Virus record (IMG/VR): IMGVR_UViG_3300034072_001021 | Location: 62,001 to 126,000 of that record | Direction: 5' to 3' (one strand) | DNA: 64,000 nucleotides | In this document: in pieces, positions 47,289 to 63,500 of the stretch | Layout: each line of letters opens with the position of its first letter | Position numbering within the stretch: position 1 is the stretch's first letter | Made by a program: the position numbers and the translations under genes | Notes under the pieces: generated by a model | The model's input: only the letters and a program-made list of their open reading frames with translations | The model's database searches: none | Told to the model about the DNA's origin: nothing

Positions 47289-47846
47289 CTAAAGGAGTTT
47301 AGTGACGTAGTACTCATGCAACAGAGACAAACGAATGTCTTCGGTCACATGACTGACACTGTGGTTGATGTAACTCGGGAAAATGTAGATGTCGCCTTTC
47401 TTCGGCGAGATCCGCAGATTAGCGAAGTGATGATTACGCATCGGCTTGGGATAACCACGAGCAGCATTACACCGAGGGTCGAACATGTTCAATGCATTCT
47501 CTGAATCCGACGGATAACAGATAGCGGAGATCACAGACCCAGGATGCAGGTGTGGGAATAGCCCTTCACCCGGAGGAATCCACTTGCCGTTTGTCTCGAC
47601 ATAGAATTCGTCCATTTCGTAATTGAAGCTGTGCTTCGAAAACTCCATGACAGCCGGGGTGATAATCTTGTCACGCATTTCAATGATGACAGGATAGTGT
47701 TCAGCCAAGACTTTTACCTGACTGTCATCTTCACCGCCCGTCATTGAATAGAGCGTGAACACCTCATTCGCAAACAAATCCATATCAAACTGATCGGCTA
47801 CGTTGAAGTGTGCGATCTCAGTGATCCATGGCTGCAAGTATTTCAT
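47289..47846 (-). CDS. Fe(II)/2-oxoglutarate oxygenase (TIGR02466-like)
   Basis: GGAGG RBS; PHLHPGSVISAICYP, FDPR, PKKGDIYIFPSYINHSV, IRLSL. Confidence 0.85.
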   Translation of the reverse strand: MKYLQPWITEIAHFNVADQFDMDLFANEVFTLYSMTGGEDDSQVKVLAEHYPVIIEMRDKIITPAVMEFSKHSFNYEMDEFYVETNGKWIPPGEGLFPHLHPGSVISAICYPSDSENALNMFDPRCNAARGYPKPMRNHHFANLRISPKKGDIYIFPSYINHSVSHVTEDIRLSLLHEYYVTKLL

Positions 47847-47847
47847 C

Positions 47848-48279
47848 TTAACCTCCCATGACAGAGCTAAGACCTTCCTCCGTGCACTCGAGTAGACAGT
47901 ACTTGACTGTCTGAGGTGCCCAGCCAGACTCCAACCAGTTTGGCATCGTCTTAAGACGCTCAATGATCTGGTCGTAAGTGGTGGGGTCTTTATCGTAAGT
48001 GACGAAGTAATGGTCGTGACCTAGGAACAGGTCTTCATCACGCAGGGTTTCGTAAATATCAATGCCATAGATCTCTTTAAGCTTGAACGCGTAAATGATC
48101 GCTACAGCATACGACTTGGCCGGATAGATCAATGGGAACGTTGCTTCCTTGAAATAGTGCAAGGCGTTCTCTACCAGCTCTTCTTCTTCGATAATCTCCA
48201 TGTTCTGGAAATCATCGGGATGATTCACTACCAGCTCTTCGTAGAGAAGCTGGTATTCCTTATACGGTTTGGAATTCAT
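47848..48279 (-). CDS. acidic hypothetical protein in the radical SAM cluster
   Basis: Coupled to both neighbours; YPAKSYAVAIIYA motif. Confidence 0.65.
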   Translation of the reverse strand: MNSKPYKEYQLLYEELVVNHPDDFQNMEIIEEEELVENALHYFKEATFPLIYPAKSYAVAIIYAFKLKEIYGIDIYETLRDEDLFLGHDHYFVTYDKDPTTYDQIIERLKTMPNWLESGWAPQTVKYCLLECTEEGLSSVMGG

Positions 48280-48703
48280 AATTGCTCACAAATGTGACCC
48301 GTAATTCAGGTTCGGGAGACGGTCTGACGTAATGAATCCAGCTGGCAGGGAATATGATCATTTTACCTTCTTCAGGGATAATCACGTTCTCACTACCGTC
48401 TGGCATGTTCATTACCAACTCACCCAATGAGTCAGTCAGGAATACCACTGAGGTGAATTCGTGAGGCAGGTGATCATGCGGCTTCACACCGACATCACCA
48501 ATGTGCACATGGTTAGCGCACAACCACAGGTCTTCACGTCCAGTGACCAACTGAGCCACAGGAAGAATGTGATCAATCGCCCATTGATTGAGTTTGCTCG
48601 AAGCAATGACGCCCAGATTGGGTTCAGCCAATAACTCAGCCAAAAGCCAATCTGGGACATCTACGCTAGAACATCCCATTTGTTTCGCATTCTCACCAGA
48701 CAT
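48260..48703 (-). CDS. Fe(II)/2-oxoglutarate oxygenase
   Basis: PHDH...TSVVFL, PEEGKMIIFPASWIHYV, RVTF (HxH...H...R); start uncertain (48703 or 48679). Confidence 0.8.
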   Translation of the reverse strand: MSGENAKQMGCSSVDVPDWLLAELLAEPNLGVIASSKLNQWAIDHILPVAQLVTGREDLWLCANHVHIGDVGVKPHDHLPHEFTSVVFLTDSLGELVMNMPDGSENVIIPEEGKMIIFPASWIHYVRPSPEPELRVTFVSNYEFQTV

Positions 48704-49686
48704 TCGTCTACCCCTAAGTGCGACATGACCGAGTGTATATCGCCGCGTGCACACCGATTGACGTGCATGCATTTACTACACAGGTCGCTAGTGCTCCACT
48801 TGATCAACTCAGTCAGATAAATTGATTCGTAGAACTCTTCGATAGACTCTGGTGTCCACGGTTGTTCAAGAGCAAACGCTTGATCGAAGATAGGGAACTT
48901 TTCAATCAGCGTAGGTGTATAGAACAACTCACCTTGCCGATAGGTCAGCTCTAAGCTATCTGTGGGAGGCTTGATCAGATAACGGTTGTACGGCGTATCG
49001 CGACACTCTTGAATGACATCGCAAAACTTACCAAACTCGTTCAAGAATAGTTGCCGATTGATCAGGTCATCAAACCCTCGGCGAACATGAGGGAAGACAT
49101 ACTCAACAAGCCTTCTCACACCAAAGTTCAATTCATGAAGATCTTGGTTGGCCTTCGGAGTAAAGTCACGTACAGAGTCACCAGTCATATTCACCGTCAA
49201 GTAAAGCAATTCGAACTTTACATCGGGTAGATGACTGATTACAAAGTCCACTCGACGTTTTACCAGATCTTGGTGTTTCTGGTTGTATGTGCTTTTGAGT
49301 GGAAACGGAGTTGCCAGTGTGAACGACTTACCTGCCATCAGTACATTCACTTTAGCACAGAGTTCTTCTAAACCATCATCGGACAATAACGCCAGCGGTA
49401 GCACGATACTTTCGTAACGTTCTGCTAGATCCTTGACCAACGGATGATCGAGAATATCAATCCCTGCCTTAGACGCAATCACGTCCACTGGCCCCACTGT
49501 GAACTCACGCAGCCGATAACCCCCTTGAGCCATCTGGTCAACCAATGTAATCAAACGCTCACGGTCATTATCGAAAGGACCGGGATCAAAGTCCCGGTCA
49601 ACCATGCAACCGACACACTGGTACTTACAACCCTGCAATATCTCAAGCGTCAGGTTAAACGCCTGGTTTGGAATTATTGCTGACAT
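48661..49686 (-). CDS. divergent radical SAM-like protein
   Basis: GCKYQCVGC (CxxxCxxC); GPVD where GGE is expected; C-terminal CSKC..VNRC...C cluster. Confidence 0.75.
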   Translation of the reverse strand: MSAIIPNQAFNLTLEILQGCKYQCVGCMVDRDFDPGPFDNDRERLITLVDQMAQGGYRLREFTVGPVDVIASKAGIDILDHPLVKDLAERYESIVLPLALLSDDGLEELCAKVNVLMAGKSFTLATPFPLKSTYNQKHQDLVKRRVDFVISHLPDVKFELLYLTVNMTGDSVRDFTPKANQDLHELNFGVRRLVEYVFPHVRRGFDDLINRQLFLNEFGKFCDVIQECRDTPYNRYLIKPPTDSLELTYRQGELFYTPTLIEKFPIFDQAFALEQPWTPESIEEFYESIYLTELIKWSTSDLCSKCMHVNRCARGDIHSVMSHLGVDECLVRMRNKWDVLA

Positions 49687-50707
49687 GACTAAGCCCCACT
49701 AGACAGTCACGGATCTTCATGCGCTCCATGATGTTGATGATCCCCTTCTCACTGCAGCTACTCATGTAGACGCACGTCATGCAGGGAGTGTCAGCCAAGT
49801 ACTCCATAGCTTTGTTCATGGCCTTCTGACGGGTATCGAGAAGATTCTCCATTGTCCAGGGCTTGGGGATGGTGAACTCGTCTTCAATAAACGGACAGTC
49901 GTCTTTGAGGAAGGGCACCCAGTACAATTTACCGCCGGTGTACAGCAAGTTCACCATAGTGCCTGTATGGTAGCACAGATCGGGATTACGGCGACGCTCA
50001 TCTTCACCAGACAACCCAGAATAGAACTGAGTGATGCGGTGTGACATGCGCTTGATATTCTCGCCAACAATCAGATCCTTGTTCGGTAAACGACCGTACG
50101 GGATATTCAAGATGTCATCTTTGTCCACAGGGAACTCGACATCAAATCCGTTCATCATCATTTCGTCAAAGTCTTCACCCACAGTCTCGTGAGTGCAGTT
50201 CACCACAAACCCAGCTTCGTTCAGATAAGCATCTTTAAGATGCTCTTTTACGAAGTTCAGTTTGGAGACGATCATGTCAGAGAACTTATTCGACTTGAAA
50301 AAGTGCGGAGCAGCAGGCATCAGGAAACGGACTGCTTTGCCAGGGATCGCGCGATCGATCTCTTCACACATCACCGCGTACTTGTCCATGTCTTTCTCAA
50401 GGAACGCAGCGTTGAAGGTCACCTGATGGAACTCTTGCGCCATCTCACGGAACACTGGGTGCTCCATGACTTCATTGACGTTATCGGCAGACATGTAGTC
50501 AGTAGGGCCAATACCGAGATCGAATGCAACGTAACCGTTGTCAACCATCTCATTGATCAATGCACTCAATTCAGGGATGTCATTAACATCCCCGCCCAGC
50601 GTACGATCGATCATGCAGCCAGAACAGCTGTGTTGACATCCACGGAAGATGTCAAGGGTGATTTCAAGACGTTGCCGGTGTTGAACCGACCCGTATGCCA
50701 TTTTCAT
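49655..50707 (-). CDS. divergent radical SAM-like protein, paralog of the 48661 gene
   Basis: GCQHSCSGC; GPTD; C-terminal CMTC..MSSC...C cluster. Confidence 0.75.
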   Translation of the reverse strand: MKMAYGSVQHRQRLEITLDIFRGCQHSCSGCMIDRTLGGDVNDIPELSALINEMVDNGYVAFDLGIGPTDYMSADNVNEVMEHPVFREMAQEFHQVTFNAAFLEKDMDKYAVMCEEIDRAIPGKAVRFLMPAAPHFFKSNKFSDMIVSKLNFVKEHLKDAYLNEAGFVVNCTHETVGEDFDEMMMNGFDVEFPVDKDDILNIPYGRLPNKDLIVGENIKRMSHRITQFYSGLSGEDERRRNPDLCYHTGTMVNLLYTGGKLYWVPFLKDDCPFIEDEFTIPKPWTMENLLDTRQKAMNKAMEYLADTPCMTCVYMSSCSEKGIINIMERMKIRDCLVGLSHVSNNSKPGV

Positions 50708-51626
50708 GTGAACCCCATTTATCGATTAGTCCGCGGAACCCATTGCAGGAGTTCTCCAAGGATTTGACATCACGTAAGTGCTCAGAGAGACAGTGACCGT
50801 TATACGGACAAGTCGAGCAGATAGGATTGCTATTGACTCGAGACTTCTCCAACTCACACCATTGCCGATATGCATCAAGGCTATCGAGCGTCAAGAAAAA
50901 CTCATTGTCGTTCTCATCGAACTCCAGTACAGCATAGTCGCCAGTCGGAGTGATGTAGACATGGTCATCACTGTACGCGTTACGAGTCTTCTCAAACGCT
51001 TCTTTGACCTGCGTCTCGTTTTCGAAGTAGAAGGTTCGTTCAGGATGTTCGATAACTGCCCAGACGAACTCTTCAAACTCCTTGTACGTCACATTTTGCT
51101 GGTTTGCCTGATTCGAGCTGTAAGGCTTGATCTCAGCGCTTTTCAGGTTACCCAGGAGGTTCATCGTCTGAACGTACAAGTCGGGCGTGACGGTGTCCAG
51201 AAAGGCCCTAGAAGCCAATGTCAGCACATTGAACGGCTGAGTCATCAGTAACATGTTCTGCAACACGTTCTCGTTACGCTCACGTGCACCGAAATCGTAA
51301 GACACTGAGAACTCGTAACACTGATCATGGACAATGTCAGGCATGAACGACAAGTTGGTCTGTATCACGATGTCATCGATACCACGTGCGTAGAGGATAT
51401 CGAGGATAGTGTACAGATACTCTTCCTTGAGTAGTAGAACTTCGCCACCATAGAGGTCAACGTGCCCGATGGTATAATGTTCCATGATCTCGTCAATCAT
51501 AGCCGCTACACGATCAGGACTGATGCACGTAACATCAGACAATTGCGTTGGTGTTAGGTAGCAGAAATCACACCGGAAGTTGCAGTAGTACCATGGATTC
51601 AGTGACACATTTAGATGCGTTTTCAT
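50664..51626 (-). CDS. radical SAM protein with SPASM/twitch-like C-terminus
   Basis: YCNFRCDFC, LYGGE, QTNLS, YITPTG, CSTCPYNGHC..EH...CNG. Confidence 0.9.
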   Translation of the reverse strand: MKTHLNVSLNPWYYCNFRCDFCYLTPTQLSDVTCISPDRVAAMIDEIMEHYTIGHVDLYGGEVLLLKEEYLYTILDILYARGIDDIVIQTNLSFMPDIVHDQCYEFSVSYDFGARERNENVLQNMLLMTQPFNVLTLASRAFLDTVTPDLYVQTMNLLGNLKSAEIKPYSSNQANQQNVTYKEFEEFVWAVIEHPERTFYFENETQVKEAFEKTRNAYSDDHVYITPTGDYAVLEFDENDNEFFLTLDSLDAYRQWCELEKSRVNSNPICSTCPYNGHCLSEHLRDVKSLENSCNGFRGLIDKWGSHENGIRVGSTPATS

Positions 51627-51756: not shown

Positions 51757-52845
51757 TTAGCCCTTAGCAATGAGCTGTACGGATTCGTCCACGTAAGGCG
51801 TAGGGGTCATGTATTCTGACATCCCGTTGATCTCGATGATACGTGGAGCCAATGTCTTCATCTTCTTGCAGTGGTGTTCTACCAGCCCCATCTTTTTGGT
51901 ATCTGCAATGGTCTTCTTGCAACCATTGCAGATGCTGAACATAGGACAGACATAGCACGACTGCTTCATGGTCTGAATATCGTCAGCCTCTTGAAGAGGT
52001 GTGAAGAATTCGCCAGCCATTTCTTTTTCGAAGTCGACGGGATATGCGCCATCATCACCAAACGCACCACACGTGAAGTACCCACCGCCTGGCTGCATGG
52101 CACGGATACCTTCATCGCAGTTTCTGGCTAGTGGGCAAGTGGTGTTGGCAGACTTCAATCGCCGAGCCATCTGTTTGGTATTGTACTCCCACTCCATTAG
52201 GCCTGCATCGTAGATCTGAATGTAGTGTTCGTACATATCCGCTTGAGTGAAGAAATTATCCTCACTGCCCATGACGATGCCACGATTATTGATCTTGGGA
52301 CCAGAAGCCATGACGTAATTGATCTTGGCTTCTACACCGAGTTCCTTAGCCAACCTGACAGTATCAAGAACGGAGTGACGATTGTCTTCATCAATGACCG
52401 CAATGAAGTCAAGGCTGTATCCGATCATCTCTGTAAACAGTGCGTTTACATTCCTGAAGTCTTCTTCAGTGAAGACCGTGCCATCGCCCTTGATGCGTTT
52501 GTCACCATATTGGAATGATGTGGTGATGCCTAGACGTGGATGACGGAACAATTCTGTCCACAGCTCAGGCTTCTTGTAGAACGGCCAAAGGTTACTGGTG
52601 AAACTGATACTTGCCTCAGAACCCAGACGATCCAGCATCGCAATCATCTCCCAGTAATACTCAGGAGGCATCATGAGCGGATCACCACCATTCACAATGA
52701 TGGTCCGTGTCTCTGGATAACGAGTGATGAAACGTTCGATGTCAGCAATGGTGACAATGTCATCACGGTTATCTGACAGGTGAGTACTTGAGCAGAACGT
52801 GCACCTGAAGTTACAGGCTACCGTCGGCTTAACGATAAGATCCAT
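51757..52845 (-). CDS. radical SAM/SPASM protein
   Basis: ACNFRCTFC, NGGDP, FTSNL, CPLARNC, TCG, CYVCPMFSICNGC...HC. Confidence 0.92.
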   Translation of the reverse strand: MDLIVKPTVACNFRCTFCSSTHLSDNRDDIVTIADIERFITRYPETRTIIVNGGDPLMMPPEYYWEMIAMLDRLGSEASISFTSNLWPFYKKPELWTELFRHPRLGITTSFQYGDKRIKGDGTVFTEEDFRNVNALFTEMIGYSLDFIAVIDEDNRHSVLDTVRLAKELGVEAKINYVMASGPKINNRGIVMGSEDNFFTQADMYEHYIQIYDAGLMEWEYNTKQMARRLKSANTTCPLARNCDEGIRAMQPGGGYFTCGAFGDDGAYPVDFEKEMAGEFFTPLQEADDIQTMKQSCYVCPMFSICNGCKKTIADTKKMGLVEHHCKKMKTLAPRIIEINGMSEYMTPTPYVDESVQLIAKG

Positions 52846-52849
52846 TGCG

Positions 52850-53086
52850 TCACCGATTGTGCGGAAATGGTTTTTGTTTCATCAGTTCTGTCGCTTTGGC
52901 TGAGAATGGTTCTGAACCATCTTCCCTTGCAGACAACACATAAGCGAATTCTTTACCTGGACGATGTTCTAGCACGTAGAGTTTATCGCCGTGACGAGCA
53001 TGTAGAAACGCAGGATGATCACCGCATGCATCGGTTTGAATAACACATCCGGCGTACGCAACATCACCAACCTTGAAAAGAGCCAT
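52850..53086 (-). CDS. small hypothetical protein (SH3-like FKVGD start)
   Basis: GGAG RBS before MALFKVGD; ends 4 nt before the radical SAM gene. Confidence 0.6.
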   Translation of the reverse strand: MALFKVGDVAYAGCVIQTDACGDHPAFLHARHGDKLYVLEHRPGKEFAYVLSAREDGSEPFSAKATELMKQKPFPHNR

Positions 53087-53169
53087 GGTCAACTCCATTA
53101 AAATTATCATACCGATTAGCCTGTTATGTTTTAAATACTCGGTATTTTCTATAGACCATAACAGGAGCC

Positions 53170-54186
53170 ATGGAAATGGACAAAGTACACATTGTTGTTA
53201 GCCGTCTGATGAACAACTTCGGTATCCTTCCTCAGGGTATTGTGATCGGTGGAAAACGCGTGTTCTTCCATAACGACCCGCGCATGTCGGCTGATGGAGA
53301 CACCGTCCACTTTAACTTCGATTACATGATCACCGACGGTACCATCAAGATCGACAGTGACGTAGATGCAGAGAGTATTGTTCCTGCGCACATGTTGTCG
53401 ATCACCAAGCGGTATAACAAGTTCGAGCAAATGACCCGCCTTCGCAACTTTGCTACCGAGCAAGCAAAGAAGGGCAAGTTCGACATCGACAACTTCGTTG
53501 TGCCGGGTGTCTGGTACAACAAACAACAATCCGGTCTGTCTAACCTGGTCATTCCAGATGAAGAGACGGTCATTGTCAAACCGGCCGATGGTGCTCGTGG
53601 TATCGGTCAGTTCATGGTGAAACTGGATAAGATCCCATTCGTGGTATTTGTCGAGACACTCGATCGGTACCGCTTAGGGAAAATAACTGAAGAGCAGTTT
53701 TGGTTAGGACTCAATAAGTTCTCAGGTTGCTATGTCTATTCCACGGCTGGCGAACATTACGAGAACGAAGGTCTTCTTTCCCTGAAGAACCAAGGCTACG
53801 TAGTTCAGGGTTTTGTTAAAGACGTCTGCTCTGAATACCGACTCTTGACCGATCTTGATGGTAAGATCGCTTACTGTCAAATGCGAGGTATCCGCGATAA
53901 AGATCAGTCTGAATTCCCTCAGGCTACTGGGTCGGACACCAACAGCATCGAGGGCAGTGATATCGTCCCTATCGATGAAGTCGTTAATAAACGCACTCTC
54001 AGAGATCTGAATGCGGTTGCATCAAAAGTCGTTGGGCCTCTCAGTTCTATCGATCTCTTCTTAACCGAAGATGGTCGTTGGGGGATCTTCGAGTACTGCA
54101 ACCAGTTCGGCATCAAGGGCGTTCCAATGGAGACGACGTTCAAACTCCATTACGACTTTATTGAACGACTCATTGGAGATAAGTGA
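53170..54186 (+). CDS. ATP-grasp family ligase (RimK-like)
   Basis: VIVKPADGARGIG, YVVQGFV, EYRLL, SIDLFL...GIFEYCNQFG in ATP-grasp order; AGGAG RBS. Confidence 0.7.
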   Translation: MEMDKVHIVVSRLMNNFGILPQGIVIGGKRVFFHNDPRMSADGDTVHFNFDYMITDGTIKIDSDVDAESIVPAHMLSITKRYNKFEQMTRLRNFATEQAKKGKFDIDNFVVPGVWYNKQQSGLSNLVIPDEETVIVKPADGARGIGQFMVKLDKIPFVVFVETLDRYRLGKITEEQFWLGLNKFSGCYVYSTAGEHYENEGLLSLKNQGYVVQGFVKDVCSEYRLLTDLDGKIAYCQMRGIRDKDQSEFPQATGSDTNSIEGSDIVPIDEVVNKRTLRDLNAVASKVVGPLSSIDLFLTEDGRWGIFEYCNQFGIKGVPMETTFKLHYDFIERLIGDK

Positions 54187-54415: not shown

Positions 54416-55411
54416 TTACTTCAGGATAACGTCGTACATCGCCTTAATGCGGCAACTATCATCCAGACCATCCTCGATAAATGAATGATGGAGGAAGCAG
54501 CGCATACCACAGCGGGAGTAATACTCACACGCAAAGCAGTTGTACTTCTCAACGAAACGAAGCTCGGCCTCGTCCTTTGCCATCAGTCCCTCTTTCTCAT
54601 CGAGAATAGAGTTCTTCCCGGCTTCACTCCAGCAGGTCGTCACCACATTGTCTTTGTTGACAATCTTGGTGGAACGACAGGTGGTCTCGTTGAACTTGTT
54701 TTCCTTCCAGTCCTTGATCGGATAGGAATTCGGGTACCGTTCATTGAGATGGATGTAGAGCTTACTGATCAGATCCTCGTCGGGCTGAAGATGCTCGTAC
54801 ATGTGACTCGGGATGTAATGGTCAAAGTAGACATTGAAGTTCTCACAGAGCCAGTCCACCTCGGCACCCTCTTTACCTTCTAGGAATGACTCGATGTTCT
54901 GCTTAGTGATCACGACATTGACTGTCTTGACGTAATCCTTGACTTTCACCAGGTTCTCGAAGAACTTCTTACGGTCTTCTGGGTTGAAACGCCCCGCAGG
55001 ATCGTAGGAGGTTGCAACGATACAGTTACCGTGCTTACGAAGGCGCTCAACAAGCGCTATAAGTCGATTTACGTGATAGTAGACAAGGTTGGTACCCAAG
55101 ACCAAGATAGCGTCGTCATAGTACTCCAGAACCCGTTTACCGGCTTCGTAGAATGCGTCGAACAACGAATCAGGATATTGGTCAAGGAACAACTCACCGC
55201 CAGTGAAATTGACGACGTACTGATCAGTTGGACTGGTATTGGCCAGCAACTGATCTACCTTGCCATGAATGTCAGTCATTCCGACAATAGAATCGTGATC
55301 TTGGTGGCAGAATGAACATCTCAGATTACAGTACTCAAAGAAAATAAGATGAGCCTCCTTTCGGAGGCCCTTCTTTTCCCTGAGTATGTCTACGACAGGG
55401 ATCAACTCCAT
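54416..55411 (-). CDS. radical SAM/SPASM-like protein
   Basis: YCNLRCSFC, FTGGE, LGTNL, TSYDP.GRF, TCRS, CW, CFACEYYSRCGMRC...C. Confidence 0.9.
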   Translation of the reverse strand: MELIPVVDILREKKGLRKEAHLIFFEYCNLRCSFCHQDHDSIVGMTDIHGKVDQLLANTSPTDQYVVNFTGGELFLDQYPDSLFDAFYEAGKRVLEYYDDAILVLGTNLVYYHVNRLIALVERLRKHGNCIVATSYDPAGRFNPEDRKKFFENLVKVKDYVKTVNVVITKQNIESFLEGKEGAEVDWLCENFNVYFDHYIPSHMYEHLQPDEDLISKLYIHLNERYPNSYPIKDWKENKFNETTCRSTKIVNKDNVVTTCWSEAGKNSILDEKEGLMAKDEAELRFVEKYNCFACEYYSRCGMRCFLHHSFIEDGLDDSCRIKAMYDVILK

Positions 55412-56466
55412 TACCAGTTGGCTCCTACGAGGGCCTCATTGAGCACAGAGAGATCCGCATTCAGAATGAACCGAATCAGGTTCTCATCGTACTTACCAGT
55501 ATCACGGAAAGCCATAGCAATGCGGTGTTCACCATTGAAGATGGCGTTGACACGCTCCATGCAGACTGCTGGGTCACCCGGATTCTCGACTGCCGACAGC
55601 AGCGAGAGGATCATGGACGCACGCTTGGCAGACGACTCGTCTTCCAGTACGTTCATCAGCGTGATGGCTTCTTTCAGCATGTTCTTCAGCCATGCATCAT
55701 TCGGCTTGAAGTCGTACAGGCCAGGACGCAGCAGTTGCTGGCTAGCCAGATGAGGCATGTTCACGCAGGCCTCGAACACCGTCGGTGCAGTCAGCAGACT
55801 ATCCAGATCACAACCACCTACTTCCCAGAACTTCTCACGAGTCAGGTGACGACCCCAAACTTCCAGCGCATCATGGGCGTTGCTGAGCGCAATGCGACGC
55901 AGGATGTTCTTGATGGTTTTCGGGATCTTGCCAACACGCTGCTCGGTACGCAGACGGATCAGACGCCATTCCAGCGACAAGGCATCCGGATCATCATTGA
56001 CCAGATCGACCATGGCTTCTTGGAAAGCTTCAGTGCGCTTGTAGACTTCTTCCACTTTAGCCGCAGTGAACGTGACAGAGCCGAGTACGTCTACACGAGG
56101 TTCGCCACCGGCACAGATGACAGTGTTGAACGTGGCTTTCTTGCACACCATGATCCAGCGGAAAGTGTCCAGGTCGATCGACGGCATGAGGGCCTTGATC
56201 AACGACGCGTACAGGCGCAGATAGGTGTCGCCATCGCAATAGATCATGGTCTTGTTTTCAGAAGCATGAGCTTCCTTCATTGCAGCCAGGAACTTCTCGA
56301 CGTCTACCGTATCCAGAGAAGTAGCCCAATACAGCTGCTTGCCGACTTCTTCGTGGGCAGCGGGGAAGTACTCATGGCCATGCTCGGGGGAGATGGTGAT
56401 GACATTGTGAGATCGGTCGATCCGACGCTCCGAGTCGACATACGTCGAATTAAACAGATGGTACAT
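55411..56466 (-). CDS. hypothetical protein in the radical SAM cluster
   Basis: Strong codon bias; overlaps both neighbours. Confidence 0.7.
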   Translation of the reverse strand: MYHLFNSTYVDSERRIDRSHNVITISPEHGHEYFPAAHEEVGKQLYWATSLDTVDVEKFLAAMKEAHASENKTMIYCDGDTYLRLYASLIKALMPSIDLDTFRWIMVCKKATFNTVICAGGEPRVDVLGSVTFTAAKVEEVYKRTEAFQEAMVDLVNDDPDALSLEWRLIRLRTEQRVGKIPKTIKNILRRIALSNAHDALEVWGRHLTREKFWEVGGCDLDSLLTAPTVFEACVNMPHLASQQLLRPGLYDFKPNDAWLKNMLKEAITLMNVLEDESSAKRASMILSLLSAVENPGDPAVCMERVNAIFNGEHRIAMAFRDTGKYDENLIRFILNADLSVLNEALVGANW

Positions 56467-57217: not shown

Positions 57218-57757
57218 TTACCGGCGGCCACGGTTACTGTGGCAGCTGCTGTGACAACTGGTGTGGCAGATGGTGTTGGTCAGGGTCAGGGTGGTGAAGC
57301 GGGTATTGAGCGCATATGCGACCCAGAGATCTTCACATGCCTGATTGAAGTCTGCCAAATTCATCTCGTTACCGTTTGCAAACGGCATGGCCACATTATT
57401 GGCAAATGCTGGAACAAACGCAACTACGTTAGCAACTGCTGTTTGATCACTGACTACCGTGGCACCAACTGAGTAGTGCGACATGTAGATCACGATACGA
57501 GTATTACGTACACCACCAAACAGATTGGTCACGTATTTGAGTGCGTTGATGACATTGGTGGCGTTGGTTTTATCCTGATCGCCCCAGCTGTCATTAGTCC
57601 ACGCAGCACCCGGTCCAGCTGTGGTTCCAGCAAACCATTCTGGAAGTGAGTACGCCGGATAGTTGTTGGTGCCCCATGCAATACCGGAAATGGCCCGGTT
57701 TCGAATCAGTGAGTTAGCGTTTGCAGTCATTCGACTGCGGCGCAGTTCTTCAGTCAT
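57218..57757 (-). CDS. Cys/His-repeat-tailed protein, putative substrate/precursor of the radical SAM cluster
   Basis: C-terminus ICHTSCHSSCHSNRGRR; starts 1 nt after the SPASM enzyme stop. Confidence 0.75.
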   Translation of the reverse strand: MTEELRRSRMTANANSLIRNRAISGIAWGTNNYPAYSLPEWFAGTTAGPGAAWTNDSWGDQDKTNATNVINALKYVTNLFGGVRNTRIVIYMSHYSVGATVVSDQTAVANVVAFVPAFANNVAMPFANGNEMNLADFNQACEDLWVAYALNTRFTTLTLTNTICHTSCHSSCHSNRGRR

Positions 57758-57758
57758 G

Positions 57759-58793
57759 TCACACCTTCAATATCAGGTTTGAATGTTGGTTTCTACCGGA
57801 AAGGTAACGGAGTGTGTTCTTCAAGCCACCGCATCGACCGTTCTGCCAAGGGAGTCTGTGACAATCACCTCCACATAGATCGAACACGTCGCAGCCTAAA
57901 CAACCCGGCTCCCATGTAAGCTCTTTTACAATTTCATTGACTCGACCGTCTGACGTCAAGAACGTCTCTATCGAATCGGTGATTTTGGCGTGGTGTTTTT
58001 GAGTGGCTGCATTAGGGCAGCCGGACAACGTACCATTGGAATTGATTGTGACCAGATTCTGTTCACAGTTCCGACAGTTAGTGTCTACCTTCACCACGTT
58101 CTTCTGGATCTTCTCTTCAAGAATATCCAAGGTCTTTATCCTGACCCGAGGAGAGCGTTCTTTATAACGTTTGAATAGCGCCAGATACCAATTGTCTTGC
58201 TCTTCGTTATTAGGGAAGATGTCAAGGTTCTCAGTAGCGCTGCCATCCAGCGTCAGTCGTTCGAGTGAACACTCTTGAATAGGGAGTGACTCCAGATGGT
58301 CCAAGAACCAATCTGGGGTCTTCTGTATCAGATCTTTACTGACCGATACCTTAACAGCAATACCAATGCCTTCATCGGACAACACTTGAAGGTTGTGCTT
58401 CCAGAGGTCGTATTGTTTCTGGTTGGACCACCTGATCCAATTGTCCCAGCTTGTCCCTATCCAGCTGCCGAAGTAATCCTTGATGAATGCGATCTGCTCA
58501 TCACTCATCTTGAACGTGAGATTACTGTTGGCGCACATGGTTACATTTTCCATGTGTTTGAATCTGTCTGCAAACCGCTTGAGCTTTTCAACAGGAACGA
58601 GGAAAGGCTCACCACCATGAAACTCGAAATGGTACTGTGTATCGTCAGGATATTGCTGGATGAACTGTTCTACCCAGTCGGCGGTTGCTTCTGGATCAAA
58701 CTGTGTTTTGTCGCCATTCTTGCCGTTGGTGAAACAGTGCTGGCAATTCAGGTTACAGGTTCCAGTCGTCTTGACGTAGATGACTTTATTCAT
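57759..58793 (-). CDS. radical SAM/SPASM peptide-maturase-like enzyme
   Basis: TCNLNCQHC, FHGGEP, NSNL, NCRNC..NLVTINSNGTLSGCP, CLGC..FDLCGGDC...C. Confidence 0.93.
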   Translation of the reverse strand: MNKVIYVKTTGTCNLNCQHCFTNGKNGDKTQFDPEATADWVEQFIQQYPDDTQYHFEFHGGEPFLVPVEKLKRFADRFKHMENVTMCANSNLTFKMSDEQIAFIKDYFGSWIGTSWDNWIRWSNQKQYDLWKHNLQVLSDEGIGIAVKVSVSKDLIQKTPDWFLDHLESLPIQECSLERLTLDGSATENLDIFPNNEEQDNWYLALFKRYKERSPRVRIKTLDILEEKIQKNVVKVDTNCRNCEQNLVTINSNGTLSGCPNAATQKHHAKITDSIETFLTSDGRVNEIVKELTWEPGCLGCDVFDLCGGDCHRLPWQNGRCGGLKNTLRYLSGRNQHSNLILKV

Positions 58794-58795
58794 GG

Positions 58796-59314
58796 TTAGA
58801 GCTTCTGTTCGATAAACAACTCGAGACCAAAACTGAGCATCACGGATTGTTCATGGTTGATGGCCTGGTGTTTGACACCACGCGGAATGTAAAGCATCTG
58901 TCCTTCTTCGAGCATGAAGTTACCACACTCGGTCAGGAACTCTTTTCGACCTTCCACCATGTAGATCACGACATCATCGAGATCGATGTGCATGGGAAAG
59001 CTCAAGGAATCTTTGGGTGACAGAAAGAGATGAGCAGATACGTAACCATAATGTCCATAGTGCTTGGCTAGTGCCGCAGCTACCTTGAACATAGTTTCGT
59101 TGAACCGCTCATAACCCTCGATCTTGACTGGACAGCAATCGACTTCCATCGCCTCCAGAACATCGGTAGGACCGTTCGCTAAAACAGACCCACCGTGTTT
59201 GATATATTTGACCAGTTGCTGGAGATAAGGATAGGGGCTTGCAAGAAGATCATCAATGCGAAGATCTTCCTTCTTAAGTCCGATCAAACCAAACTCAGAA
59301 ATTCGATGGACCAT
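58796..59314 (-). CDS. JmjC/Cupin_4 (ROX-like) Fe(II)/2OG hydroxylase
   Basis: AGGAGG RBS; SAHLFLSP...SFPMHIDLDDV...EGRK, LEEGQMLYIPRGVKHQA (HxD...K...H). Confidence 0.85.
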   Translation of the reverse strand: MVHRISEFGLIGLKKEDLRIDDLLASPYPYLQQLVKYIKHGGSVLANGPTDVLEAMEVDCCPVKIEGYERFNETMFKVAAALAKHYGHYGYVSAHLFLSPKDSLSFPMHIDLDDVVIYMVEGRKEFLTECGNFMLEEGQMLYIPRGVKHQAINHEQSVMLSFGLELFIEQKL

Positions 59315-59331
59315 TACAAGCCCCTCCTTTA

Positions 59332-60906
59332 TCAGTTCATCCAGTACGCCGGCCAGACTTGACGCCACGTGCCGTCTACAGTCGCATACAGTCGACCACC
59401 TGCATTGAGCAGTTGGATTTCCTGCGTGTTACCGAGAACGGGTTCGTTAGCACCTTCCGCCACATGGCCACTCCAAGTGGCAGGCCAGAGTTGTTTCCAC
59501 TGGCCGCTGATGTAACCCTGGAGCTTACCATTCACCACACGAAGGCTGGTATTGGTAGCAGTGTTCAGGCGGACATAACGGTTGTCATGGTCACCCGAGT
59601 TGATGTGGTCGAACATGGCCCCAGCTAACAGCAGAGTCGAATCGCTGTTGAGGTTTCGTGCACGAGTCACAGCGTTGGGGATGTTACTCAGACCAACCTG
59701 TGCTTTAGTGGTTTGGTGCGGGTTGTTGGTGTCCGAAATGTGGGCGTTCAGCAAATTGCCCGCAATGAACATGATCGCTTCTTTAGTCCGTTGTGGGGTC
59801 ATGAAGCGGTTGCTTGCAGATCCCAGTTCGGCTTCGGCTTTGGTAGCCGTTTGGAAGTTATCAACCAGACCTAGACCCACCTGAGCTTTGGTGGTAGCGT
59901 GCGGGTTGTTGGTGTCAGCTGCGTGCGCATTGAACGCGTTGCCAACATGGAACATGATTGCCTGGTAAGTACGCAGGGGTGTCATGAATTTGTTGTTGAC
60001 AGTTTGTGACTCAGCCTCTGCCCGCATGGCCGTAGCAAAGTTATCCACCATGTCGAGACCAACTTGCGCCTTGGTCACTTCATGGGGGTTATCTTTACGA
60101 GCCTCATGGATCATGGTGATTTCGGTTGCCACACGAGTCGACAGAAGGTTACTGCCGTACGGTGTCATGAACCGATCCATCAGTACACCAGCGCTAGCCT
60201 CAGCATCACTGGCAGTCAGGAAGTTATCGACGTTGCCGAGACCTACCTGCGCCTTAGTGGTACGGTGTGGATTATTGAAGTCGTCAATGTGGTTGTCCAC
60301 TTTGGTATCGACTGCAACAATCTGAGCTTCCAGCTGATCACGAATGTACTGCATCTGTGCACGCAGTTCATCATGAGACGCCTCGTCACCTACCAGGATC
60401 GCATTGGTAATGCGCTCCAGCTGCCAGGTCACGTACTCCCAGCCGTAGGTGTCACCGATATCATGGATGTGGGGTGCCGGTGGATAAGCCGTCGGACGAC
60501 CAAGAACAGAACCCCACTTGATGGGACGTTCATCCAGATCCAGTTCTTCGATCAGAGCAGCCAGCGCGCCGAGGTTCCACGAATACTCACCACCGATCAC
60601 ACGGTAGTTCATCGTGATACGAATCGGAGCATTGACTTTCAGAACGACAGCACACTGGACGTCTTTACCACTACGAAGACTAGCTTGCTGGAACGGCTGC
60701 ACCAGCAGATAGTCGTCGACCGGGCGCAGAGGTTCGAGGGTGTTGGCGTCGAAGATCTCGAACGATTCGGTGAAGAAAGGGCCTGCCATAGGAACGAACA
60801 CACGTGCCGTGTTCGTTGTGATATCTCGGACCTCACCGACGATTTCGTTCGTCGGCGAAGTACCATTCAGATCCAGCGGATACTGAATGATCGGTGGTAG
60901 ACTCAT
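59332..60906 (-). CDS. tail-fibre-like virion protein
   Basis: YPLDLNGTSPTNEI N-terminus; four NPHxxTKAQVGL repeats; duplicated W.Q.WPA.W C-terminal module. Confidence 0.85.
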   Translation of the reverse strand: MSLPPIIQYPLDLNGTSPTNEIVGEVRDITTNTARVFVPMAGPFFTESFEIFDANTLEPLRPVDDYLLVQPFQQASLRSGKDVQCAVVLKVNAPIRITMNYRVIGGEYSWNLGALAALIEELDLDERPIKWGSVLGRPTAYPPAPHIHDIGDTYGWEYVTWQLERITNAILVGDEASHDELRAQMQYIRDQLEAQIVAVDTKVDNHIDDFNNPHRTTKAQVGLGNVDNFLTASDAEASAGVLMDRFMTPYGSNLLSTRVATEITMIHEARKDNPHEVTKAQVGLDMVDNFATAMRAEAESQTVNNKFMTPLRTYQAIMFHVGNAFNAHAADTNNPHATTKAQVGLGLVDNFQTATKAEAELGSASNRFMTPQRTKEAIMFIAGNLLNAHISDTNNPHQTTKAQVGLSNIPNAVTRARNLNSDSTLLLAGAMFDHINSGDHDNRYVRLNTATNTSLRVVNGKLQGYISGQWKQLWPATWSGHVAEGANEPVLGNTQEIQLLNAGGRLYATVDGTWRQVWPAYWMN

Positions 60907-60938
60907 GGAGTTACTCCACTGGTAAATGATTCATTGAG

Positions 60939-60960
60939 GATGGGGTGTTTCCACCCCATC
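60939..60960. terminator. hairpin between the two fibre genes
   Basis: GATGGGGTG-TTTC-CACCCCATC. Confidence 0.5.
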
Positions 60961-60965
60961 TCTGT

Positions 60966-63359
60966 TTACGCGAAGTAATTCGCAAGCGCGTCGTCAATAA
61001 CAACGCCCAGCTCGTCGCATAGCGCATCGATGGAAGTTTCCACCTTAGCAGCGGTGCTCGCCGGTGTCATGAACCGATCGGTAGCAGTGCCTGCAATCGC
61101 TTCTGCGTTAGACGCATCCGGATAGTTGCTGACGCTGCCAAGACCAACTTGAGCTTTGGTAACCTGGTGAGGGTTATCTGTGCGCTGACTGAATGAGATC
61201 AGTTGATCGATCTCGGCGCTGCCTTCTTTGAGATGAGGGCAGTACACGATATTCGCTGGCTCGACAGTGATCAGCTCAGACATCTGAGTCGGGGCATCCA
61301 TCGGATTATGGATGAAGCGACGGTTCGACAGCTCAGTGATGTTCAGTCGGTTACGGCACCCGCTGGACTTCAACCAGATCTCCAATTCGGAGGTCAGGTT
61401 AGTACCCACTTGCCGTACACCAATCTCGAAAGGATTGCTTACCGGGGTGAGTTCTTTCAGGAGCAGGCTCTTGATGACCATGACCAGGTCACCCTGACCA
61501 TCGATGGTATCGCGCACAGTACTGATCTCAACCAGCACCGTGTGGTGTTTGAATTCACCTTGCGAGTTATCGTCACGACCACCAGTGATCAAGAGGGTGG
61601 TGTCTGCCTGGAGGTTATCCGGAGTCGCAGCCACTTTACCGATCCGCATCCAGTGTTCACCAGGAACAACCAACTCACCGAAATCATCTTCCAGCTCAGT
61701 GATCTCCGGCACGATGAACTGGATCGATCCACCATCAACTACCTGAGAGATCTCAGCCAACACTTCGTTGTAAGTCTTACCGTCCAGTTTGGCACTGTCG
61801 GCTGCTTTGCCGGTCAGGATATCGTTTTTGGCTTCCTCGAAGGTTTTGCCGCCGAACTTAGTCGAATCACCAGCGAGGATGGTAGAGATCCAGCCCTGCA
61901 GTGCTTCTTGATCCAGGCCGAATACCAACGCCGAGTCAGCAGCCACACCGTTGTCATCGAGCTTGTTGGCTAGCAATCCATCCATGATCTCGATGCTATA
62001 TGCACCTACTTGAGCAGCCGTCACTTGGTGAGGGTTGTCAAGATCGGACACGTGAGCGTTCGACATATCGCCAACAAGGGCGTTGATGGTACGGCGAGTA
62101 GCCAGCGGAGTCATGTAACGGTTATCCAGTGTTGCATCTTCGGCTTCTGCCTGACTTGCAACCGGATAGTTCATTACGAACTCGAGACCTACCTGAGCTT
62201 TGGTGGTGCCGTGTGGGTTCTGATCGTTGGCAATGTGGTCTGCCACACCATCGCCCAGCGTTTCGGTCATAACCAAAGCCAACAGTCGTGGCGTGATAAT
62301 GCCGTTGTCGCCGACACCAGCGATCGCATCTTCGTCAGAAGCAATACCGATGTTTGGTACGTTACCCAAACCTACCTGTGCACGAGTCACGTTGTGCGGG
62401 TTCGATGTATTCGCGGCGTGAGCCTGGAATGCGGTTTGCACAATGGCGACGATCGCTTCACGGGTACGAGCAGGTGTCATGAACCGAGCGTTGGATGCAC
62501 CAGCTTCCGCTTCCGCTTGGCTAGCAACAGCATAGTTCTGGACGTTGCTCAACCCTACCTGAGCCTTGGTGGTCTGGTGAGGATTGTTGGTGTCGTCTTT
62601 GTGCGCGTTCAGTGCATTGATCGCAATTGCTTCGATCGCCTGACGGGTGCGCAGCGGGGTCATGAACCGAGTGTTCAGAGTGCCTGACTCGGCTTCCGCA
62701 GGAGCAGCTGTGGCGTAGTTATCAACCAAACCAAGACCCACTTGAAACTTGTTGACTTCGTGTGGGTTGTTCTTGTTGTTGACGTGATCGGTCATGCCAC
62801 CTTCATTCTTCTGAATGATGGCACGTTCGATATCGCCCAGGCGATCCTCGACTTCCGACATACCGACGAAATCGTCGATATTGAAGTCATGGTTCACCAC
62901 CGGGAACTGGTGAGGCAACTCAACCATTTGTTCCCAGGTAGCAATGCGTGGGTTCTGCGTGACGTTAGCCAGCAGCTCGGTCATTGCTTGGTGATCGAGG
63001 ACCCACTCGCCACCCAGAGTCTGGTACTCCATGCGGAGCTGACCAGCCAGAGCACGATCGTAGAACGAAATCGCACCGTAGACCGGCTTTCCAATGGTAT
63101 GCGAGGCGTGAGCGAAGTGATAACCGAAGTTAAAATGCTCGCCCTCTACCAAGAGGGTACCGCCCAGAGGATTGTTTACGTTCGCACCGGCCGGATAGAG
63201 GCGCAGACGAACGCTCTCTGCATAAAACGGACCGCTACGCGGAACGATGTAGTAGTGGTCAAACATCCCACGCGATTGGATCGCTTGGGTCTCCGTAACC
63301 TTGTTGGTCACCGCGACACCCGTCGGGTCAAAAGGGTACTGCGGAATAGTTGTACTCAT
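60966..63359 (-). CDS. tail-fibre-like virion protein
   Basis: GGAG RBS before MSTTIPQYPFDPTG; six NPH...QVG repeats; DSxKxxGKT motifs; N-terminal domain paralogous to the 59332 gene. Confidence 0.85.
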   Translation of the reverse strand: MSTTIPQYPFDPTGVAVTNKVTETQAIQSRGMFDHYYIVPRSGPFYAESVRLRLYPAGANVNNPLGGTLLVEGEHFNFGYHFAHASHTIGKPVYGAISFYDRALAGQLRMEYQTLGGEWVLDHQAMTELLANVTQNPRIATWEQMVELPHQFPVVNHDFNIDDFVGMSEVEDRLGDIERAIIQKNEGGMTDHVNNKNNPHEVNKFQVGLGLVDNYATAAPAEAESGTLNTRFMTPLRTRQAIEAIAINALNAHKDDTNNPHQTTKAQVGLSNVQNYAVASQAEAEAGASNARFMTPARTREAIVAIVQTAFQAHAANTSNPHNVTRAQVGLGNVPNIGIASDEDAIAGVGDNGIITPRLLALVMTETLGDGVADHIANDQNPHGTTKAQVGLEFVMNYPVASQAEAEDATLDNRYMTPLATRRTINALVGDMSNAHVSDLDNPHQVTAAQVGAYSIEIMDGLLANKLDDNGVAADSALVFGLDQEALQGWISTILAGDSTKFGGKTFEEAKNDILTGKAADSAKLDGKTYNEVLAEISQVVDGGSIQFIVPEITELEDDFGELVVPGEHWMRIGKVAATPDNLQADTTLLITGGRDDNSQGEFKHHTVLVEISTVRDTIDGQGDLVMVIKSLLLKELTPVSNPFEIGVRQVGTNLTSELEIWLKSSGCRNRLNITELSNRRFIHNPMDAPTQMSELITVEPANIVYCPHLKEGSAEIDQLISFSQRTDNPHQVTKAQVGLGSVSNYPDASNAEAIAGTATDRFMTPASTAAKVETSIDALCDELGVVIDDALANYFA

Positions 63360-63500
63360 TTCTCTTTCTCCGTTGGGATCTCCATCGATCTGAAGACCGA
63401 TTAACGGGGATCTTGGTGTACGGCACTTTTCTAAAAACAGACTGTGTCTAATATGGAATATCAAACAACTGGCATACCATTATCGTGGGAGACGCGTTAA

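Follow-up and report, generated by a model that had tools for sequence, protein, structure and literature searches.

A conserved Cys-His tail on a putative phage virion protein encoded beside radical-SAM enzymes

The window analysed here, a 64,000-nt stretch of the IMG/VR virus record IMGVR_UViG_3300034072_001021 (positions 62,001 to 126,000), carries a gene cassette immediately downstream of two tail-fibre-like structural genes. In gene order, the fibre genes are followed by a JmjC/cupin oxygenase-like gene, a radical-SAM/SPASM gene (enzyme A), the gene for a protein ending in a periodic Cys-His tail (hereafter the tail gene), two conserved genes of unknown function, radical-SAM enzyme B, an opposite-strand insert, radical-SAM enzymes C, D, E and F, and two 2OG oxygenase-like ORFs flanking a conserved small protein (Table 1). 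All six radical-SAM paralogues have CX3CX2C near the N-terminus, with full SPASM Cys patterns in A, B and C and partial ones in D, E and F.

Table 1 Features of the cassette, with the frequency of each among 47 complete loci where counted
Coordinates	Strand	Feature	Supporting observations
59332..63464	-	Two tail-fibre-like structural genes (524 aa and about 800 aa)	phrog_2163 virion structural protein and phrog_13857 tail protein, E 1e-125 and 1e-135; same neighbours in relatives
58796..59368	-	JmjC/cupin oxygenase-like protein (190 aa as listed; start codon uncertain, overlaps the fibre gene)	PF08007 JmjC_2, 48 bits; 41 of 47 loci
57759..58793	-	Radical-SAM/SPASM enzyme A (344 aa)	CX3CX2C at residue 13, so no N-terminal recognition domain; PF04055 32.9 bits (cut-off 29.5); SPASM model TIGR04085 26.7 bits (cut-off 27, borderline); Cys at 240, 243, 259, at 298, 301, 307, 311 (CX2CX5CX3C) and at 321; 42 of 47 loci
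57218..57757	-	Tail gene (179 aa, 19.6 kDa): predicted compact alpha/beta body plus C-terminal tail	No Pfam, NCBIfam, PHROG or PADLOC hit
57221..57268	-	The tail: (C-H-x-x)x3 followed by R-G-R-R	Directly after the last predicted beta strand, which ends at C164
56450..57205	-	Conserved 251-aa partner of unknown function	phrog_20767; model pLDDT 93.2; 42 of 47 loci; Atu_ph07 homologue not detected in virions
55411..56466	-	Conserved 351-aa protein of unknown function	No family hit; 23 of 47 loci by phmmer, with a gene of similar size in the slot elsewhere
54416..55411	-	Radical-SAM/SPASM enzyme B (331 aa)	CX3CX2C at residue 28; seven-Cys SPASM pattern; 46 of 47 loci
51757..52845	-	Radical-SAM/SPASM enzyme C (362 aa), best-conserved gene of the cassette	PF04055 48.3 bits; 57% mean column identity and eight invariant C-terminal Cys in the family alignment; 46 of 47 loci
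50664..51626	-	Radical-SAM enzyme D (320 aa)	Partial C-terminal Cys motif; 45 of 47 loci
49655..50707	-	Radical-SAM-like enzyme E (350 aa)	CX3CX2C at residue 24; hhalign probability 100% against F; 30 of 47 loci
48661..49686	-	Radical-SAM-like enzyme F (341 aa)	CX3CX2C at residue 20
47289..48772	-	Three small ORFs: two 2OG-Fe(II) oxygenase-like (170 aa and 224 aa as listed) flanking a conserved 143-aa protein of unknown function	PF13759 46 bits for the 224-aa ORF, weak hit for the 170-aa ORF; 143-aa family in 41 of 47 loci, including the marine layout

Inspection of the nucleotide sequence confirmed the observation made in the first-pass annotation, which had described three CHxx units followed by RGRR at the end of a gene starting 1 nt after a SPASM enzyme gene. 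The last 16 codons of the tail gene read C-H-T-S, C-H-S-S, C-H-S-N and R-G-R-R and are followed by a TAA stop. The gene of enzyme A ends with TGA at 57759-57761, one base follows, and the ATG of the tail gene lies at 57757, while the next gene starts 12 nt after the tail stop, behind an AGGAG. The first 163 residues are rich in Ala (14.1%), Asn (12.3%), Thr (11.0%) and Trp (3.1%), again as first annotated. At the DNA level, TRF detected a 12-nt period of 3.2 copies at 57238-57276, and no other (CHxx)n run was found in the six-frame translation of the window. A promoter and terminator scan showed no enrichment and no attenuator after the tail gene.

To determine whether the tail could have arisen by chance, we collected homologues of the protein. 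Megablast of the region against 50,697 phage records found nothing, and only protein-level searches were informative. A word-indexed search gave 49 homologues at 31–94% identity, and in the alignment of 50 sequences C164, H165, S167, C168, H169, C172, R176, R178 and R179 were invariant, whereas mean column identity was 45%. Column entropy was 0.18–0.76 bits in the tail against 1.2–2.7 in most of the body. An exhaustive profile search found 559 clusters (50% identity) at E ≤ 1e-3. Among 265 non-redundant family tails, 246 had exactly three C-H-x-x units; Cys and His are present in every unit by the way units were defined, position 3 is free, position 4 is Ser (79%) or Asn (19%), and R-x-R-R follows in about 90% of tails (RGRR in 198), giving the consensus [VI]-(C-H-x-[SN])3-R-x-R-R. 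Variants include two or four units, loss of RxRR, and tandem expansion of whole modules up to about 15 units. Lack of conservation of the tail among homologues had been named beforehand as a result that would refute the first interpretation, and instead the tail proved to be the most conserved part of the family; its pattern is far beyond chance. The family is essentially restricted to phages: a scan of one genome for each of 185,579 prokaryotic species in GTDB gave a single hit, on a 4.3-kb contig that carries the phage cassette and adapter-like ends, which argued against a bacterial origin.

We next asked what kind of protein carries the tail. AlphaFold2 with the family alignment predicted a confident, compact alpha/beta domain (pLDDT 90.6, pTM 0.83), with the first Cys at the end of the last strand and the tail itself poorly ordered and therefore accessible. 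Pfam, NCBIfam, PHROG and PADLOC models gave no hit for three distant relatives either. Foldseek against the PDB gave nothing for the tail protein (best E 0.5) or for the 251-aa partner (best E 0.1, TM 0.21), and PDB sequence searches also gave nothing. BFVD returned only uncharacterised phage proteins, including a 296-aa protein of Agrobacterium phage Atu_ph07 (AUZ94952), which ends in the same tail and sits in the same gene slot. This protein is gp170 of the published Atu_ph07 virion proteome, as its computed mass of 31.89 kDa equals the tabulated value, as do the masses of two neighbours. In purified virions gp170 was found with 8 unique peptides and 35% coverage in gel slices 1–9, and was most abundant in the top slice (slice 1), where proteins of about 87–137 kDa run. 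The samples had been heated at 95 °C in SDS, but the listed buffer contains no reductant, so the high-mass species could simply be disulfide-linked. The adjacent radical-SAM, cupin and 263-aa proteins are not in the virion list. Ralstonia phage RP31 was examined as a second proteome source, but its small ORF070 has no Cys-His tail. The suggestion in the first-pass annotation that the body resembles a virion protein is thus backed by proteome data, for the Atu_ph07 relative only.

Other observations also pointed to the fibre module. In one branch (P0156 of locus L044, 315 aa), the protein continues after four Cys-His units into a Peptidase_S74 intramolecular chaperone domain (residues 206–269, 44.8 bits), a hallmark of trimeric fibres and spikes, and other members carry a glycine-rich domain, PF21722. 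The window protein has no Peptidase_S74 domain. In every lineage the gene follows tail-fibre or baseplate genes, which are phrog_2163-type fibres in the window, collagen-like fibres or giant structural proteins in marine contigs, and PAAR/baseplate genes in others.

To evaluate the linkage between the tail gene and the enzymes, we fetched 80 IMG/VR loci with the tail protein, one of which is identical to the window. Together with loci from other look-ups, all 88 loci carrying the tail held at least one radical-SAM gene with CX3CX2C (1–7, usually 4–7), usually with a JmjC/cupin and 2OG oxygenases and next to tail-fibre genes; the nearest radical-SAM gene lay within 50 bp in most and typically within 0–7 bp. 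Locus GC ranged from 27 to 55%. The layouts were independent, comprising a jumbo, phiKZ-like type resembling the window, the Rak2-like Atu_ph07 and Phosso type, marine contigs of about 150 kb with two tandem tail genes of about 128 aa followed by up to 7 detected radical-SAM genes, and a minimal cassette with only enzymes A and C plus two oxygenases. Three further distant members showed the same cupin, radical-SAM, tail gene, ~235-aa, ~360-aa order. Considering that these loci had been found through the tail gene, we also performed the reverse search with a profile of enzyme C, which found 365 stretches in IMG/VR. Of the 49 best loci with at least 9 kb on both sides, 45 held a complete tail ORF, 3 held one cut by the locus edge, and 1 (L123) held none within 10 kb, enzyme A there being followed directly by the 251-aa gene. 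The association with radical-SAM/SPASM enzymes is therefore much stronger than could be seen from the window alone.

The residues after the Cys-His units also varied with the type of oxygenase. Tails ending in RxRR had the JmjC/cupin within 3.2 kb upstream in 69 of 95 non-identical cases, the rest mostly having the marine layout. In contrast, the three lineages whose tails end in four units plus GD(G/S)PG lack the cupin and carry in exactly that slot a PF13640 2OG oxygenase, from the family that includes prolyl 4-hydroxylases, which was seen in none of the other loci. This co-variation rests on one clade and hence on one evolutionary event, but it supports the earlier idea that the follower is enzyme-related.

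We then compared the cassette with characterised maturation systems. SPASM enzymes are strongly associated with peptide and protein modification (Haft and Basu 2011), and the best, though weak, curated hits of enzymes A, B and C are peptide or protein maturases. No enzyme reached the cut-off of any curated maturase family: the best hits of enzyme A were anaerobic sulfatase maturase (57.5 bits), PapB (53.6), YhhB (49.0) and DarE (48.4), against cut-offs of 340–650. We also considered that the 351-aa, 251-aa or 143-aa neighbours might be degenerate radical-SAM proteins, but hhalign rejected this.

The closest functional analogue is the HXS anti-phage system described in 2026 (PMC13128918), in which HxsA, a full-size protein with five His-x-Ser repeats and rich in basic residues, is matured by the radical-SAM enzymes HxsB and HxsC plus the small helper HxsD, with a +8 Da change on an SHRSS motif; mutating the His or Ser of the modified motif abolishes function. 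The tail likewise contains three tandem His-x-[S/N] triads in a full-size protein. However, HxsA is bacterial and periplasmic, has a peptidoglycan-binding domain and lacks the interleaved Cys, whereas here the protein is phage-encoded, a relative is virion-associated, and every triad is preceded by Cys, which is not described for HxsA. The HxsA model and Pfam gave no hit for the window protein or three distant relatives, HxsB and HxsC models scored 30.7 bits against a cut-off of 370 and 22.7 against 267.9, and no HxsD hit was obtained for the small cassette proteins. SCIFF and other ranthipeptides or sactipeptides (CteA/CteB, PapA/PapB) have Cys at every fourth residue of a C-terminal core next to a SPASM enzyme, a register matched by C164, C168 and C172. 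Their precursors are bacterial peptides of about 45 residues, with six Cys in SCIFF, while this is a 179-aa protein with a predicted folded body, three tail Cys, an invariant His next to each Cys, and no NCBIfam precursor hit at E ≤ 0.01. CrpA/CrpC (PMC13692751) provides a precedent for a SPASM enzyme installing ranthionine cross-links on a large Cys-rich protein encoded next to it, but this pair is archaeal, has no virion role and is unrelated in sequence, and CrpC is reported to have a predicted recognition domain that enzyme A lacks. In triceptides containing His (HaaB on HAA, YhhB on HNR, HtkB on HTK; PMC11499958), His-C2 to C-beta links are made on aromatic-X-X motifs, which the HTS, HSS and HSN triads fit, and H-x-[S/N] occurs in 98% of non-terminal units. 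However, triceptide precursors are short peptides, this chemistry alone does not explain the invariant Cys, and the maturases do not belong to a curated cyclophane-synthase family (XyeB, YhhB, FxsB, GrrM/OscB, AmcB): enzyme A gave weak hits to YhhB (49.0 bits against 445), AmcB (46.7 against 425) and FxsB, and enzyme D gave only 15–21 bits. Trimeric phage fibres and spikes with C-terminal Peptidase_S74 domains or HxH metal sites (endosialidase, T5 pb1, T4 gp37, P2 gpV) share the fibre-module position, the virion location and a periodic motif of metal-ligand type at the C-terminal end, but the motif here is C-H-x-S, with no HxH in the tail, and those fibres are not known to be linked to radical-SAM cassettes. 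The cassette may thus at most work like the HXS, ranthipeptide, CrpA/CrpC and triceptide systems, and is not one of them by any curated model.

These cumulative results led us to favour, with only somewhat better than even confidence, the view that the gene encodes a structural protein of the tail-fibre/baseplate module of a jumbo phage, probably a trimer, whose exposed tail is matured before or during assembly by the co-encoded enzymes. In this view, one or more radical-SAM/SPASM enzymes, foremost enzyme A, whose gene is translationally coupled to the tail gene, would abstract hydrogen atoms and form links on the Cys and/or His residues, likely from Cys-S to a side-chain or backbone carbon, as in ranthi- and sactipeptides, and/or from His-C2 to the beta-carbon of the Ser/Asn two residues on, as in His-containing triceptides, within a chain or between the three chains. 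The JmjC/cupin would then probably hydroxylate the basic follower, and the body would act as a permanent leader that stays in the virion. The product would be a redox-insensitive, protease- and heat-resistant staple at the C-terminus of a virion protein that works outside the cell, and interchain links would also explain the top-of-gel behaviour of gp170. The analysis itself establishes that the gene is real, that its tail is conserved in a phage-restricted family, that the family is linked to the enzymes in both search directions, that a relative is present in virions and that one branch carries a trimer-fibre hallmark, while the identity of the tail as the substrate, every chemical step and the purpose are inferred. 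The favoured view is also consistent with the tail being the only Cys-rich motif in the module and with the tandem expansion of tail modules in some phages, as in multi-core precursors. On the other hand, direct chemical evidence of any kind is lacking, six or more enzymes seem excessive for 12 residues, so some probably act on other substrates such as the fibres, the L123 locus indicates that the enzymes need not depend on the tail gene, and the eight C-terminal Cys of enzyme A may mean fully ligated auxiliary clusters rather than an open site for a substrate thiol. The interpretation in the first-pass annotation is therefore partly supported: its proposals of up to three cross-links and of His as a JmjC target remain guesses, its long leader is probably the wrong picture because the body is predicted to be a folded structural domain that stays in the virion, and its alternative of a trimeric Zn/Fe site gains support from the Peptidase_S74 fusion and cannot be excluded.

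That alternative is the main rival, although we consider it less likely than not by a clear margin. Nine Cys and nine His from three chains could bind Zn, Fe or Cu or form disulfides and so lock the C-terminus of an unmodified trimeric fibre-like protein, as the HxH iron sites do in T4 gp37 and P2 gpV, while the enzymes act on the fibres, another protein or a small molecule. The Peptidase_S74 fusion and the fibre-tip metal sites fit this reading equally well, strict conservation of both Cys and His is what a metal site predicts, and the virion location, the non-reducing gel and L123 are compatible with it. It does not explain the near-obligate two-way linkage and translational coupling to SPASM enzymes across unrelated phage lineages, the conserved Ser/Asn at position 4 or the follower-oxygenase co-variation. 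Alternatively, and improbably, the protein could be an adaptor whose tail recruits the enzymes, for example by ligating an auxiliary cluster or binding an acidic pocket through RxRR, directs them to modify the fibres during assembly and then stays in the virion. Fibre genes always lie beside it, the enzymes outnumber the sites in the tail, and radical-SAM cassettes have been placed in the host-recognition cluster of pelagimyophages (PMC7029224); however, fibre types differ between lineages whereas the tail family is the constant element, and no precedent is known to us. A true RiPP precursor, with the modified tail released as a peptide or cofactor as with PQQ or mycofactocin, is very unlikely. 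The C-terminal core, SPASM enzymes and multi-core expansions would suit it, but no protease or exporter was recognised in the cassette, the body is confidently predicted to fold, the relative is retained in virions at full predicted size or larger, and one branch continues past the tail into a fibre chaperone domain.

A more far-reaching possibility, which remains doubtful, is that the cassette is a virus-encoded, RiPP-like pathway that turns the (C-H-x-S)3 tail into a multiply cross-linked Cys/His knot, possibly joining the three chains covalently in a chainmail-like lock or creating a new metal-binding or redox group on the virion. This would be the first radical-SAM post-translational modification of a virus structural protein, and a phage-side counterpart of the bacterial HxsA defence effector, widespread in jumbo phages and marine myophages.

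Radical-SAM/SPASM maturation is established for short bacterial and archaeal peptides and for a handful of proteins, but we found no report of it for a virus particle in the literature searched, nor any paper on this family. Searching for the motif as text returned only German words, and the longer motif strings occurred in no paper. Papers on the cultured carriers pPa_SNUABM_DT01, RSL2/RSF1, FLC6, SURPRISE13 and Atu_ph07 only list the genes as accessory or metabolic. If the tail is modified, the family would offer a large, diverse and easily testable set of enzyme-substrate pairs; the substrate would be a soluble protein with a confidently predicted fold whose C-terminal tryptic peptide carries the whole motif. 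The finding also touches the HXS defence, where a radical-SAM-matured HxS-repeat protein blocks phage DNA entry. If the tail is modified, phages would be using RiPP chemistry to harden or functionalise their host-recognition apparatus, which would explain the puzzling clusters of 2 to 12 radical-SAM genes reported, without a function, in many jumbo phages, pelagimyophages and perhaps Campylobacter phages.

Several side observations concern the neighbouring ORFs of the cassette in the window and variant cassettes in other loci. Between radical-SAM B and radical-SAM C, the cassette of the window is interrupted by an ORF on the opposite strand that gave no family hit. This ORF was present in only a few relatives (loci L005, L008, L011, L014, and L015), so it looks like a recent insert. 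A small ORF matching phrog_21763, which carries two Cys and several His, was found directly upstream of radical-SAM C and likewise in only a few relatives, and it could encode a second small substrate or a helper. Radical-SAM C itself was unusually conserved, much more so than the structural genes around it, with 57% mean column identity across phages of 27–55% GC and many invariant non-Cys residues in its alignment (A4), and it has 365 relatives in IMG/VR. We also observed that both fibre-like proteins encoded in the window contain many copies of an N-P-H...T-K-A-Q-V-G-L type repeat, and that the longer ORF as listed starts at a TTG well upstream of a more plausible ATG.

Positions of the neighbouring ORFs and variant cassettes
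Sequence	Position	Strand	Feature
Window	53170-54186	+	338-aa ORF
Window	52850-53110	-	86-aa ORF (phrog_21763)
Window	51757-52845	-	Radical-SAM C
Window	59332-63464	-	Two fibre-like proteins
L107	6986-7180		Expanded tail modules
L116	6507-6710		Expanded tail modules
L087	3-362		Expanded tail modules
P0054			Expanded tail modules
L090 (Ralstonia phage RP31)	3173-3550 and 4788-9898		Parallel cassette
L123	2302-5239		Cassette lacking the tail gene
L171	14420-15985		B12-binding radical-SAM enzyme, 521 aa

In some phages (L107, L116, L087, and P0054), the tail modules were tandemly expanded to 10–15 C-H-x-S units, separated by VPV or VV linkers, before the final RGRR. The only bacterial-genome hit was a 4.3-kb contig (L087) whose terminal ORFs begin with MCIRDS or MCIRDR. 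This looks like a sequencing-adapter read-through, indicating that the contig is probably phage contamination of the assembly. In addition, a full jumbo-phage-type cassette was found on a contig of 241,743 bp filed under a Streptomyces sp. genome (L002), which is probably a co-assembled jumbo phage rather than bacterial DNA.

L123 was the one full-flank locus in which the cassette lacked the tail gene; there, enzyme A (383 aa) was followed directly by the 251-aa partner, and the upstream genes were not fibres. In one distant cassette (L171), a B12-binding radical-SAM enzyme was also present, which suggests methylation in addition to the other steps. A parallel cassette was found in Ralstonia phage RP31 (L090), where two fibre genes are accompanied by a 125-aa ORF with H-T-H and Tyr-rich motifs but no Cys-His tail, a 295-aa ORF, and then about four genes that are radical-SAM-like according to the annotation of the record's authors alone. 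This cassette may represent a different substrate family for a similar enzyme battery.
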